NCBI GenBank assembly: GCA_002269645.1 | Contig: NIVC01002329.1 | Coordinates: 5,219-69,218 of the forward strand | Direction: 5' to 3' | Length of the DNA stretch: 64,000 nt | From: Macrostomum lignano | Lineage: Eukaryota | In this document: positions 43,770-59,059 of the stretch, piece by piece | Layout: each line of letters begins with the position of its first letter | How positions within the stretch are numbered: position 1 is the stretch's first letter | Translations under genes and position numbers: made by a program | The notes under the pieces: model-generated | The model's input: only the letters and a program-made list of their open reading frames with translations | What the model was told of the DNA's origin: nothing | Database searches by the model: none

Positions 43770-44167
43770 CTAAGCAGTGGCGTTGCCGCCATCTCCGGCC
43801 AGGGGAGCCACCTCGTCCGCCGGCTTCTTGTCGTTGTCTTCGTCGCTGCTGCTGCTGTAGTCCTGGTCGCTCCGGTTTCTCACCCGCCGCAGCTCCATAG
43901 CCTCGGTCTGCTGGGCCATGGACACACCATGGTTGGCGTTGGCCGGCACGCAGCCCAGTCGTTTGCCGAGCGGAGTGGAGGCGAATGCCGAACGAAATTC
44001 GGCGTTGACAGCGAAGTAGGCCAGCGCTGAGGTGGCCATGCCAGCCTTGGCCAGGAGCAGAGCGGCAGTGGACAGCCCCAGGTAGAGGCCGCTGTCAATG
44101 TGGAGCAGGCTGAGCAGGCTGCAGGCAGCCAGGATTGAGTAGGGCGTCCAGCAGACCATGAAGCCCA
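43770..44167 (-). CDS. Opsin exon 4 of 4 (TM6, TM7 with Lys296, C-tail); gene = complement join(58773-59059,56629-56965,50066-50159,43770-44167), 371 aa
   Basis: ttgccag| acceptor, phase 1; FMVCWTPY; LLAKAGMATSALAYFAVNAEFR aligns without gaps to bovine rhodopsin [22 protein letters not shown]; TAG at 43770. Confidence 0.9.
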
Positions 44168-44168
44168 C

Positions 44169-44675
44169 TGGCAAGGGTTTTGGTGGCTTTTAGTCAATGT
44201 TCTTAGGGTTTTTGGCAAGGTTTTGGTGGATTTTAGTCAATGCTCTTAGGGTTTTTGGCAAGGGTTTTGGTTTCTTTTAGTCAATGTTCTTAGGGTTTTT
44301 GGCAAGGGTTTTGGTGGATTTTAGTCAATGCTCTTAGGGTTTTTGGCAAGGGTTTTGGTTTCTTTTAGTCAATGTTTTTAGGGTTTTTGGCAAGGGTTTT
44401 GGTGGCTTTTAGTCAATGCTCTTAGGGTTTTTGGCAAGGGTTTTGGTGGCTTTTAGTCAATGTTCTTAGGGTTTTTGGCAAGGGTTTTGGTGGATTTTAG
44501 TCAATGCTCTTAGGGTTTTTGGCAAGGGTTTTGGTTTCTTTTCGTCAATGTTTTTAGGGTTTTTGGCAAGGGTTTTGGTGGCTTTTAGTCAATGCTCTTA
44601 GGGTTTTTGGCAAGGGTTTTGGTGGCTTTTAGTCAGTGTTCTTAGGAGTTTTTGGCAAGGGTTTTGGTGGCTTTT
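44169..44675. repeat. 44-bp minisatellite abutting and including the opsin exon 4 acceptor
   Basis: Unit GCAAGGGTTTTGGTGGCTTTTAGTCAATGTTCTTAGGGTTTTTG, about 11 copies. Confidence 0.95.
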
Positions 44676-45184
44676 AGCAAGAATATTTAAGGGGCTTATT
44701 TTTAGGAATTTAGCAAGTGTTCTAGGGGAGATTTTGGGCATTGTGCATCGGAAGCTTTCGTAGGCATTTTTGGTAGTCGGATATGAACGTGCACTGAAAA
44801 GTCCGTTTTGGTCTAGAATAATGTACTGTTTGTACTTTTAATGTTACTTCCCCTACTCTTTCTCTGCAGAGCACAGTGCACATAGGAAGCTAATGGGCAC
44901 TTGGCCAGGTAACAGTCAAGGACCGCTAGTCGTCCTACTAAAGCACCACTTAAGTAGTCCTTGATGAATCCGTCTGCTTGCTCTTCGTCGGTTTTTGTTC
45001 TTTTCTGCGCTGTAACGTGCCGTAAAATAGGAGACTTTATTTTCCCGAGCGATGGAACTGGAGGTAAAGTTGATAAGCTACAGCTGGTGTTTACAGTAGC
45101 AATATCTACTAAGGCGGGAACTCCCCTTGATAAATTTTTGCTGCGAATTTCAAGAAAAAATTTCTTTTTGTTTCGAACCTTCAA

Positions 45185-45474
45185 AGATATTCAGCGATTC
45201 TGCCAGAAGGTCGGATTTATCCCATAAGCGCTAGTACAGTGTATTCAACACATCCCTGTGCGCCAATCAGCACTGCGCCTCAGTGCAGCCTTGCCAAGCC
45301 TCCAAATTTCATCAGCACGTCGACTGCATCTGTCTGCATCAGCTCTGGTTTCATTGGTCCCTGGTCTTCACCCGGGCGGAGCTTCTGGACCTTCAAGATG
45401 TGGCAATAGGTGACTATGGAGTCATGGACGCTCCAACCGAAACTAGAAAATAGGACTCTAGTTTCGCTGATCAA
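45185..45474. mobile_element. Dispersed repeat, copy A (unclassified; copy B at 54942-55208)
   Basis: Long shared blocks, e.g. CCCTGTGCGCCAATCAGCACTGC.CCTCAGTGCAGCCTTGCCAAGCCTCCAAATTTCATCAGCAC, in the same orientation. Confidence 0.7.
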
Positions 45475-56628: not shown

Positions 56629-56965
56629 GTGCGCAAAGATGGCCACATAGGAGCCGACAATGACAGCCAGGGGCAGCAAAAACTCGGCAGTCAACAGGCC
56701 GCCCAGGTAGACTTTGTCGCGGGTCCGGTTGCCCTCCCAGTCCAGATCGCAGGCGGCCACGTGACCGACTCGGCGGACTCCGGCGACGTCGAACATCGGC
56801 GGGAGGCTCCAGGCTGCGGCAACCACGGCGGAGAGACAGACGAGGACCAGGACTTGCGCTCTGCCGAACGGCTTGTTGCGGGTCACCATGCGGCAGCGCA
56901 GGGCTGACAGGCCGGTCAGCAAGTTGATGTTGAACAGGCCCAGGGAGCTGGTGCTGAACACGTAC
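56629..56965 (-). CDS. Opsin exon 2 (TM3-TM5)
   Basis: aaaag| acceptor, phase 2; YVFSTSSLGLFNINLL...LRC; WSLPP; EL2 CDLDW; EFLLP...SY; donor GTGAGC. Confidence 0.88.
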
Positions 56966-57023
56966 CTTTTTGGATTTTTCGGGCGGCAAAAGTTTGACAA
57001 AGTTTTCGTCTTTCGTTTCTTTG

Positions 57024-57890
57024 GATTCTCTGACTCTCTCCGATTCTTACTGACTCTCTCCGATTCTCTCTGACTCTCTCCGATTCTCTCTGACTCTCCG
57101 ATTCTCTCTGACTCTCTCCGATTCTCTCTGACTCTCTCCGATTCTCTCTGACTCTCTCCGATTCTCTCTGACTCTCTCCGATTCTCTCTGACTCTCTCCG
57201 ATTCTCTCTGACTCTCTGATTCTCTCTGACTCTCTCCGATTCTCTCTGACTCTCTCCGATTCTCTCTGACTCTCTCCGATTCTCTCTGACTCTCTCCGAT
57301 TCTCTCTGACTCTCTCCGATTCTCTCTGACTCTCTCCGATTCTCTCTGACTCTCTCCGATTCTCTCTGACTCTCTGATTCTCTCTGACTCTCTCCGATTC
57401 TCTCTGACTCTCTCCGATTCTCTCTGACTCTCTCCGATTCTCTCTGACTCTCTGATTCTCTCTGACTCTCTCCGATTCTCTCTGACTCTCTCCGATTCTC
57501 TCTGACTCTCTCCGATTCTCTCTGACTCTCTCCGATTCTCTCTGACTCTCTCCGATTCTCTCTGACTCTCTCCGATTTTCTGACTCTCTCTGATTCTCTC
57601 TGACTCTCTCCGATTCTCTCTGACTCTCTCCGATTCTCTCTGACTCTCTCCGATTCTCTCTGACTCTCTCCGATTCTCTCTGACTCTCTCCGATTTTCTG
57701 ACTCTCTCTGATTCTCTCTGACTCTCTCCGATTCTCTCTGACTCTCTCCAATTTTTTACTCTCTCCAATTCTCTCTGACTCTCTTTGATTCTGTACGTTT
57801 GTTCTTTATTTCCTATTTTTCATCTTGTTGTGTGTATGTGTGTGTGAGAGAGAGAGAGAGAGAGAGAGAGAGAGAGAGAGAGAGGGAGAG
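57024..57890. repeat. 18-bp array (CTCTCCGATTCTCTCTGA)n + spacer + (GT)n(GA)n, copy 1
   Basis: Ends ~60 nt upstream of the opsin exon 2 acceptor; source of the RESER-repeat ORF N-terminus. Confidence 0.93.
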
Positions 57891-58772
57891 TTACCCAAGC
57901 CGGCAGACTGTTTTGATGTTTATCGGGTCCGATGTCTATCGCTACACTTGATCAAATGCTTTAGCGAATAAATCTTGCCGTCTGTCAGTAAGCCAGCTAG
58001 TAGCATCAACTGAATTTAGCTTCCTCTAACGCTACACAATACGCTTAACTTGTTGCAAAACCGAAAATCTTTGACAGTTGATTGAAGTTGACTAATTCGT
58101 CGAGTGCTCTATCATTGGCTCGCTGTCTACTCAAGTCCAGACTCGACCGACGTCTTCAATCAAATAAATTATGCTTTGCCAAATGTTAGTTGGAGTTTGC
58201 AGCAACTACGCTGGCTTGAAGAAGCTTTCTAGACGCACTCAACCACAAGCCCGCAAACCAATATGGCTGGTGTAGGGCTTGCAGCCTCCGCAAATATCTC
58301 TCTCTACCTACAGTTGATCGGCTCCCCTCGGCTTTCTGGAGATCGTGGCGGAGACGGCAGTTTTTTGAAGTATATTCCACTAGAGCCGAAATTGATTCCC
58401 GCTTTTTCTGCCTGCCTCCCCCCCTCTAATATTCCAGAAGCCAAACCGACTCAAACTGCGTGACAGGCGGCTTGAAATGTTCCATATATGATTATGAAGC
58501 AAAACTGAGTGCTTTTAGTTCGGAGTTGCAGATTTTGACTTTATGTCATTTTTTCAGCAGGGGGTCTCACAATTGCGTTGGATTCCGACATCTTTAATGC
58601 AGATTTTTTCAACTAATCCAGTGGATATCAACAGCGCTGCTGCAAGACAGTTAAGTAGAGGTTGGCCGCTAATGTTAATGCTACCAGATCCGCTCTGTTC
58701 TATAGTACACAACAACCTGAATTAATAGAAACCGCCTGAAGTCCCTCCTCCCCCTGAGCAGCCCAGTCTCAC

Positions 58773-59059
58773 CAGTAGCACCAGGCCATGTGGAAGGCCC
58801 ACTCTCCGGCCAGCCAAGCCGACGCCAAGTTAAGCGAGGCGGCCGACAGCACGCACAGACAGTTGCCAACGAAGCCGGAGCACAGCACGTGCATCGATGG
58901 ATTGCGCAACGATGGCGAGGCCAGGATGTTGTAGGCGGCTAGCCCGTTCGAGATGAAGCTGGCTAAGAACACTGCACTGCACCAGCCGGCTAAGGCGTAA
59001 TGCTTCCAGTTGCTGCTTTCAGCAATGACTACTGAGCTAGTATTGTTTGTTAGAGGCAT
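58773..59059 (-). CDS. Opsin exon 1 (N-terminus, TM1, TM2, EL1 to Cys110)
   Basis: N-glycosylation sequon NNTS/NTS; SNGL; SLRNP; GEWAFHMAWC (WxFGxxxC equivalent); donor GTGAGA, phase 2. Confidence 0.88.

Follow-up and report, generated by a model that had tools for sequence, protein, structure and literature searches.

A probable xenopsin-B-type opsin gene without the known counterion sites in the flatworm Macrostomum lignano

What kind of protein keeps the retinal-binding lysine of the opsins and has none of the acidic residues established as counterions of the retinal Schiff base, through which opsins become sensitive to visible light? The question is raised by a split gene on the minus strand, at 43770-59059, of a 64-kb window of Macrostomum lignano DNA (by window we mean the whole analysed stretch, 64,000 nucleotides of contig NIVC01002329.1). 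The original prediction, made from the letters of the window, called the product an atypical opsin; this part stands, while the family, which it had missed, is indicated by intron positions and by grouping with other flatworm sequences to be xenopsin B. The locus is probably a functional xenopsin-B-type opsin gene. To the explanation as a whole, a selected xenopsin-B-type opsin gene of a macrostomid flatworm, counterion-less and with an atypical role, we give a probability of roughly 60%.

Gene structure, selection and the retinal pocket

The exons were located by translating the minus strand of 43700-59200, which revealed three long opsin-like stretches, after which the junctions were read in the DNA. 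There are four exons and three introns (phases 2, 0 and 1) with GT-AG splice sites, every donor being gtgag and every acceptor closing with ag. The spliced coding sequence of 1116 nt (287 + 337 + 94 + 398) specifies 371 amino acids, and its GC content at third codon positions is 0.80, against a GC content of 0.47 in the introns. No AATAAA or ATTAAA signal is present within 770 nt downstream of the stop codon.

Exon 1 (58773-59059, 287 nt) starts with the ATG at 59059 and encodes an N-terminal NTS glycosylation sequon, transmembrane helices (TM) 1 and 2 and extracellular loop (EL) 1; in the bovine rhodopsin numbering used throughout, its codons include N83 (58864-58862), N94 (58831-58829) and C110 (58780-58778), and it ends inside the W112 codon (phase 2) at the donor gtgaga. 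Exon 2 (56629-56965, 337 nt), with aaaaag before it and gtgagc after it, covers TM3, TM4, the EL2 beta-hairpin and TM5, and ends six codons past Y223 (phase 0). It contains Y113 (56964-56962), L134-R135-C136 (56901-56893), the EL2 residues R179-R180-V181 (56775-56767), H183 (56763-56761), C187-D188 (56751-56746) and D190 (56742-56740), and, in TM5, E211 (56685-56683). Exon 3 (50066-50159, 94 nt) reads IRRHRSSIVSTSSGNQARRDRQFVIHVLAII and encodes intracellular loop (ICL) 3 and the start of TM6 (IRRHRSS...RRDRQFVIHVLAII), ending in the codon six residues before W265 (phase 1). The DNA separating exons 2 and 4 contains 56 open segments of 94 nt of the form AG...GT/GC, and this one alone combines a polypyrimidine tract (ctccctcccccgcag) with a gtgag donor and a plausible ICL3/TM6 sequence. 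An apparent extension of the exon 3 match into the intron, full of stops and gaps, was rejected as noise. Exon 4 (43770-44167, 398 nt including the TAG), preceded by ttgccag, encodes the TM6 CWTPY motif with W265 (44150-44148), TM7 with L292 (44060-44058), K296 (44048-44046) and S302-A-L-A-Y306 (44030-44016), helix 8 with N310-A-E-F-R314 (44006-43992), a Cys at a palmitoylation-type position and an acidic, Ser-rich tail.

Residues were assigned by alignment to bovine rhodopsin and by HMMER alignments to PDB opsins, with MAFFT and HMMER both used for K296. The original prediction had described the same 371-residue protein and the same retained and replaced residues, from K296, the C110/C187 pair and R135 to Y113, V181, R179-R180, LRC, SALAY and NAEFR, with no acid at 292 and none evident at 94; exons, splice sites, phases and each of these residues were reproduced, positions 292 and 94 being Leu and Asn. 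The four junctions it spoke of are three, as there are three introns, and the gap-free alignment it reported holds within TM3, TM4-EL2, TM5 and TM7; relative to bovine rhodopsin, three residues are deleted in ICL2 and two after W191.

When 1.84 billion representative proteins were scanned exhaustively with phmmer, one close relative emerged, at 66% identity, the remaining matches being at most 28% identical. This relative is another M. lignano protein (PAA90994.1 / A0A1I8H915), annotated merely as a GPCR-domain or hypothetical protein. A full-length, word-indexed protein search gave no match, probably owing to the low-complexity tail; a query with the core only returned the M. lignano cluster alone. 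The gene of the relative (L001, contig NIVC01000099.1) has four exons like the window gene (8363-8661, 9925-10261, 15504-15597 and 21008-21408), of which the second and third match the window exons exactly in length (337 and 94 nt). Assembled, its reading frame is intact, with canonical splice sites and 376 codons for amino acids. The GenBank annotation of the M. lignano assembly was built on a transcriptome assembled with the genome as guide (PMC5730564), so that RNA underlies the L001 junctions between exons 2 and 3 and between exons 3 and 4.

DNA similarity between the two loci is limited to the four exons (69-78%; 76% in exon 2) plus one dispersed repeat of about 110 bp, and exon 1 is 73% identical at the amino-acid level. 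The 10-kb flanks of the two genes show no synteny, having repeats alone in common. The ratio of nonsynonymous to synonymous divergence (dN/dS, Nei-Gojobori) is 0.226/0.815 = 0.28 over the seven-transmembrane core and about 0.93 in the termini. The window gene is intact and under purifying selection, and L001 is its orthologue or an old paralogue. The relaxed selection that the original prediction had considered is contradicted by the core ratio, by the intact related gene and by the conservation of D188 and E211. It had also considered an exon 2 that restores E181; this was looked for, and no second exon 2 or other opsin fragment occurs in the 64-kb window.

Several comparisons indicate that the protein is an opsin. 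Pfam 7tm_1 matches it (E = 3.5e-21), and K296 is present in about 90% of the best 150 phmmer matches, nearly all of these having Y113 and E181. Named matches are arthropod pteropsins, amphioxus c-opsin, polyclad and brachiopod xenopsins, bivalve opsins, hemichordate and echinoderm opsins, and cnidarian opsins with E292 resembling ASO-II, including Exaiptasia and Nematostella sequences (P0037, P0040). Against the PDB, a two-sequence profile scored 65 bits with human SWS1, 55 with bovine rhodopsin and 44.8 with the best non-opsin, the PrRP receptor, an advantage of about 20 bits for the opsins. Scores of clade-specific hidden Markov models (HMMs) did not separate the opsin families. The HP(K/R) tripeptide of r-opsins is not present after TM7, where NAE is found instead, and r-opsin matches rank lower in the searches, in agreement with the earlier exclusion of an r-opsin.

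The AlphaFold2 model, calculated from the window protein and database sequences, has a predicted local distance difference test score of 86.9 and a predicted template modelling score of 0.82. Besides the seven helices and helix 8 it has a beta-hairpin in EL2 (strands 159-162 and 167-170); in fold it comes closest to the rhodopsins of squid, jumping spider and cattle, a result to be read with the caveat that the input alignment consisted of opsins. K280 of the window protein corresponds to K296, lies in an LLAKAG context and is conserved in the L001 protein, and C94 and C168 align to the disulfide pair C110 and C187. The pocket residues G121, W191, F212, F261, W265, Y268, A295 and K296 are all in place. 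Between the window and L001 proteins, 30 of 33 retinal-pocket positions are identical, compared with 161 of 244 elsewhere in the core (Fisher p = 0.0018). Because the pocket is significantly more conserved than the rest, we argue for a conserved ligand pocket of the rhodopsin type, and infer from it that the protein would bind retinal at K296.

Intron positions and grouping with xenopsin B

The introns of seven other opsin genes were mapped on the alignment, and their positions were checked against the invariant Y223 and W265. The window gene and L001 share all three of their introns: in W112 (phase 2), after 229 (phase 0) and in 259 (phase 1). The xenopsin-clade gene of Pinctada imbricata (P0126) has the second and third of these introns, at the same positions and in the same phases, and no others, with a middle exon of 106 nt; its protein, which carries NKQFR and shows 37% identity to Maritigrella xenopsin, falls into a cluster with the xenopsins of Maritigrella and Terebratalia. 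The Mya arenaria gene (P0035) has these two introns and two more, its homologous middle exon being 103 nt. Bovine rhodopsin, amphioxus c-opsin and a Ptychodera opsin have introns at 121 (phase 1), 232/233 (phase 0) and 312/313 (phase 0), so that the c-opsin-type intron lies three codons later, after 232, than the 229 intron of the window gene. A Nematostella opsin with E292, ASO-II-like (P0173), has introns at 54/92/168/228/292, a Tubulanus opsin has yet another pattern, and an Asterias opsin is intronless.

Xenopsins are known to have two conserved introns, the first near but distinct from the second c-opsin intron and the second found in xenopsins only (PMC5648526, PMC7529461). The window gene carries both of these and not the c-opsin introns: intron 2 (50160-56628, phase 0, after position 229) is the first xenopsin-type intron and intron 3 (44168-50065, phase 1, in position 259) the second. 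With about 1100 possible sites, the chance that two of three introns fall at both xenopsin positions is about 1e-5, before allowing for splice-site preferences. Intron 1 (56966-58772, phase 2, within W112) occurs at a position absent from every comparator gene; three codons upstream of it, the Mya opsin has an intron of phase 1.

Flatworm sequences labelled as xenopsin A or B were taken from the supplement of Rawlinson et al. 2019, and the xenopsin B alignment comprised DAB27253, DAB27256, DAB27258 and DAB27259. Several derived states are common to the window protein and the polyclad xenopsin B proteins, namely those of Prosthiostomum and Echinoplana, Stylochus B and Prostheceraeus B2: LR(C/H) at 134-136 (LRH in polyclads, LRC in the window protein), E211-F212, (I/L)LAKA around K296, and E312. 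W175, otherwise near-invariant, is lost, the sequence being FFGL in polyclads, MFGV in the L001 protein and MFDV in the window protein, and NPxxY is degenerate, as DSIIY in polyclads and SALAY in the window protein. Being common to xenopsin B, E211 is a signature of the clade and not a private oddity; it is also present in a Lingula xenopsin. BLASTP identity is highest to polyclad xenopsin B (30%), by a small margin. In neighbour-joining trees the sister group of the Macrostomum pair was xenopsin B alone in 161 of 200 bootstraps for TM4 to helix 8 and in 191 of 200 at full length; in 175 of the 200 full-length replicates, the pair was placed as sister to the P. vittatus B2 sequence.

The likeness has limits. 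The polyclad proteins, such as Prostheceraeus vittatus DAB27258.1 and the partial sequences of Stylochus, Echinoplana and Prosthiostomum, share with the window protein K296 in (I/L)LAKA, L134-R135, the missing W175, E211-F212, E312 and the lack of NxQ. They differ in overall sequence (about 30% identity) and in keeping an acid in the beta-3/turn part of EL2 (VKDG..C; D181 if a gap of two residues is allowed), where the window protein has a loop of normal length, V181 and no acid. D188, R179-R180 and N83 are found in the Macrostomum-type proteins only and not in polyclad xenopsin B.

Xenopsin A proteins (Maritigrella crozieri, the Terebratalia 'ciliary opsin' and Pinctada P0126) are alike in their two conserved introns and in their protostome distribution, and N310-A311 of the window protein are as in the NAQ motif of Maritigrella. 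They differ in having DRY, an intact (N/D)PxxY, NxQ, VxPx and E181, and are 25-27% identical to the window protein; the Maritigrella xenopsin pigment signals through Gi (PMC6805122). The xenopsin A signature of NxQ with a C-terminal VxPx is absent from the Macrostomum pair, where the tripeptide is NAE or NSE and the tail has VAPL in the window protein versus SIPL in the L001 protein; xenopsin B likewise lacks both NxQ and VxPx (PMC6805122). The tail (43770-43830, minus strand) was also noted for its VAPL as a VxPx-like ciliary-targeting motif and for the acidic Ser cluster SSSSDEDND; SIPL at the aligned place in L001 makes conservation of VAPL doubtful. Taken together, gene structure, derived residues and trees all appear to point to xenopsin B.

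Schiff base, signalling and competing explanations

Acids at pocket positions are confined to D188 and E211. Among 122 K296 sequences, the window and L001 proteins alone have no Asp or Glu at 83, 90, 94, 113, 181 and 292, the sites where an acid is established, or has been proposed, to stabilise a protonated Schiff base, the window protein having Asn at 83 and 94, Ala at 90, and Y113, V181 and L292. Five other K296 sequences without an acid at 113 and 181 carry E292 (two cnidarian, ASO-II-like ones), D83 or E83. N83, N94, Y113, LRC, R179, R180, V181, H183, D188, D190, E211, L292, K296 and SALAY are identical in the two Macrostomum proteins, as is the stretch AACDLDW around D188, and helix 8 reads N(A/S)EFR in both. 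The original prediction had singled out D188 and E211 as unusual acids; both are there and conserved in L001, and D188 is rare (4 of the 122 sequences, including these two), whereas E211 belongs to the xenopsin B signature. Homology to H211 would place E211 beside the ionone ring and well away from the Schiff base.

In bovine rhodopsin, position 188 contacts the chromophore. D188, the sole acid near the chromophore, is on the beta-4 strand of EL2, and the register of strands 159-162 and 167-170 in the model sets R179 opposite D188 and V181 opposite A186. D188 may therefore be charge-paired rather than a free counterion, and a modelled R179-D188 ion pair over the chromophore may be as likely as a free D188 counterion. 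The original prediction had put forward four options: D188 as counterion, a bound anion, a UV pigment or a photoisomerase. Without a canonical counterion, the Schiff base in the dark state would be unprotonated or weakly stabilised, giving an ultraviolet (UV) or short-wavelength pigment, or one that depends on pH or anions. Because the canonical counterion is lacking, an unprotonated, UV-absorbing Schiff base is the default expectation, based on counterion mutants and on ASO-II (PMC12401545); we regard it as possible, with the odds against it. A visible-light or bistable pigment, its Schiff base stabilised without E292 by D188 (tuned by R179) or by an anion held by R179, R180 and H183, seems unlikely.

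ASO-II opsins (Acropora tenuis Antho2a and relatives) are a natural precedent for doing without a canonical counterion, similarly lacking an acid at 94, 113 and 181 and the E/DRY motif (PMC12401545). They differ from the window protein in having E292, which aids chloride binding and acts as photoproduct counterion, where the window protein has L292; they are restricted to cnidarians, and the introns of P0173 are different.

For signalling, four activation residues are replaced alike in the window and L001 proteins (D2.50 by N, E3.49 by L, N7.49 by S and P7.50 by A), while R135 (R3.50), Y223 (Y5.58), W265 (W6.48) and Y306 (Y7.53) are kept. These replacements make weak or atypical coupling to G proteins probable, judging from the residues. 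The protein might serve as a retinal photoisomerase or as a retinal store for other photoreceptors, as proposed for flatworm xenopsin B; a photoisomerase-like rather than a sensory role is plausible at somewhat under even odds. RGR and retinochrome are alike in binding retinal, in their weakened NPxxY and G-protein interface and in being thought to regenerate chromophore; they form a separate clade, the tetraopsins, and nothing in the present analysis pointed to a kinship with the window protein. The counterion of retinochrome is E181 (cited in PMC12401545). For xenopsin B, the degenerate NPxxY and tripeptide and a possible role as a non-signalling protein or photoisomerase have been noted before (PMC7529461, PMC6805122).

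Several observations weigh against reading the locus as a counterion-less xenopsin B with an atypical role. Opsins from outside Macrostomum are no more than 21-30% identical to the protein, and an HMM built from the 12 best non-opsin matches scored as high as the opsin-clade HMMs. The intron comparison comprises seven other opsin genes, none of them an r-opsin or a certain tetraopsin gene. In the neighbour-joining tree the Macrostomum pair and the xenopsin B clade did not join xenopsin A, and trees without the labelled xenopsin B references were unstable, the pair even joining non-opsin G protein-coupled receptors (GPCRs). As the Macrostomum pair and xenopsin B are both long branches, long-branch attraction could account for part of their grouping. 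Strictly conserved as it is, D188 could function as a counterion, and degenerate motifs are no proof of lost signalling, because ASO-II opsins signal without E/DRY (PMC12401545).

The last two points are the substance of the best-surviving alternative, a visible-light sensory pigment in which the D188 carboxylate stabilises a protonated Schiff base, directly or via water, and a G protein is activated through R135, Y223, W265 and Y306. The identity of D188 and its surroundings in both proteins, its rarity, the chromophore contact at this position and the ASO-II precedent speak for it. It is nevertheless distinctly unlikely: R179 across the modelled hairpin may neutralise D188, Ala takes the place of S186, which usually connects EL2 with the Schiff base, and none of D2.50, N7.49 and P7.50 is retained.

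A light-independent class-A receptor, or another non-photochemical protein of opsin descent that has kept K296 for some other reason, would account for the many altered GPCR and opsin motifs, the low and roughly equal distance (21-30% identity) to all opsin groups and the non-opsin HMM scores level with those of the opsin HMMs, and opsins with light-independent sensory roles are known (PMC10733189). We consider it improbable in view of K296 in its A-K-(A/S) context, the retention of W265, Y268, F261, F212, G121 and W191, and a pocket significantly more conserved than the remainder.

In an anion-dependent pigment, chloride held by the basic EL2 cluster R179, R180 and H183 would be the counterion. 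All three residues are kept in both proteins, Arg at 179 and 180 being uncommon (4 and 5 of the 122 K296 sequences), and such a pigment would have parallels in Antho2a, an ASO-II opsin of corals, and in the chloride site at His181/Lys184 of the long-wave cone opsins of vertebrates; in ASO-II chloride is the counterion by nature, and in E113Q and E181Q mutants it can stand in for the lost acid (PMC12401545). ASO-II needs E292 for high-affinity chloride binding (PMC12401545), the window protein has L292, and R179 may be engaged with D188, making this explanation very improbable.

Finally, a pseudogene or a prediction artefact assembled from chance reading frames, to which the absence of one single open reading frame (ORF), the introns full of minisatellites and the absence of the protein from the collections searched might point, is effectively refuted by intact reading frames with canonical splice sites at both loci, conservation limited to exons (bar one short repeat), the dN/dS of 0.28, the third-position GC of 0.80 and a relative with a transcript-derived gene model.

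Surroundings of the gene and meaning of the finding

The window is very rich in minisatellites with periods of 14-50 bp, at 43000-60000 and in other parts, for example at 8345-9840, 26158-27382, 29907-31066, 31633-32485 and 42238-43467, a load that fits the tandem-repeat-rich genome of M. lignano (PMC5730564). Within the opsin gene, a 20-bp minisatellite (57027-57792) makes up the bulk of intron 1. Intron 2 holds minisatellites, (GA)n tracts and a GIY-YIG-like ORF: an array with a 20/41-bp period (55404-56604) begins 25 nt past the exon 2 donor, a 50-bp unit is repeated 29.5 times at 50794-52268, and the (GA)n tracts (53249-53389 and 54680-54837) flank the ORF (53917-54582, minus strand), which has 221 amino acids, a GIY...YVGET-type motif and no Pfam match. 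The motif suggests a remnant of a GIY-YIG endonuclease from a mobile element. A 44-bp array (44169-44677) in intron 3 ends exactly at the exon 4 acceptor. The repeat of about 110 bp occurs in the opsin introns (45294-45402 and 55046-55154) and 3' of the L001 gene (L001 24489-24598), at 72-75% identity; it has no Rfam match and is probably a dispersed repeat. No Rfam family was found anywhere in the 64-kb window.

Two further genes were recognised. At 5055-18700 on the plus strand lies a multi-exon Diaphanous-related formin, with fragments matching Drf_GBD, Drf_FH3 and FH2 and a poly-proline FH1; with its FH2 exon as query, the protein collection yielded no close relative. An ORF of 298 amino acids at 32657-33553 on the plus strand belongs to a second class-A GPCR (7tm_1, 1.2e-14) and stops within TM6, so more exons are likely; its best PDB matches are the prostaglandin E2 receptors EP4 and EP3, and it is not an opsin.

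In the opsin comparison set, P0110 (Branchiostoma belcheri 'pinopsin-like'), P0080 and P0055 have no acid at 113 or 181 and keep D83 or E83. Natural opsins of such a counterion-poor kind may be commoner than published work implies.

Since both the family and the degeneracy of its motifs have been described before, the finding refines existing knowledge and opens no new category. New are the xenopsin B identity and the complete lack of known counterion sites. The first extends the xenopsins, and more precisely their little-understood B branch, to Macrostomorpha: a dedicated flatworm survey found no xenopsin in macrostomids (PMC6805122), and Voecking et al. list an r-opsin alone for M. lignano. 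A xenopsin B in Macrostomorpha would make the A/B duplication older than the split of the macrostomorphs from the other rhabditophoran flatworms. Ciliary photoreceptor-like cells are known from macrostomids, and a link to them is possible. The second provides a natural opsin that is under selection and has none of the established counterion sites, including the E292 of ASO-II, a clean test case for protonation of the Schiff base. If D188 or an anion site were to act as counterion, it would be another independent counterion solution among animal opsins, at a site never seen in a wild-type opsin. As M. lignano is open to transgenesis and RNA interference, the photoisomerase role suggested for xenopsin B could be tested in vivo.

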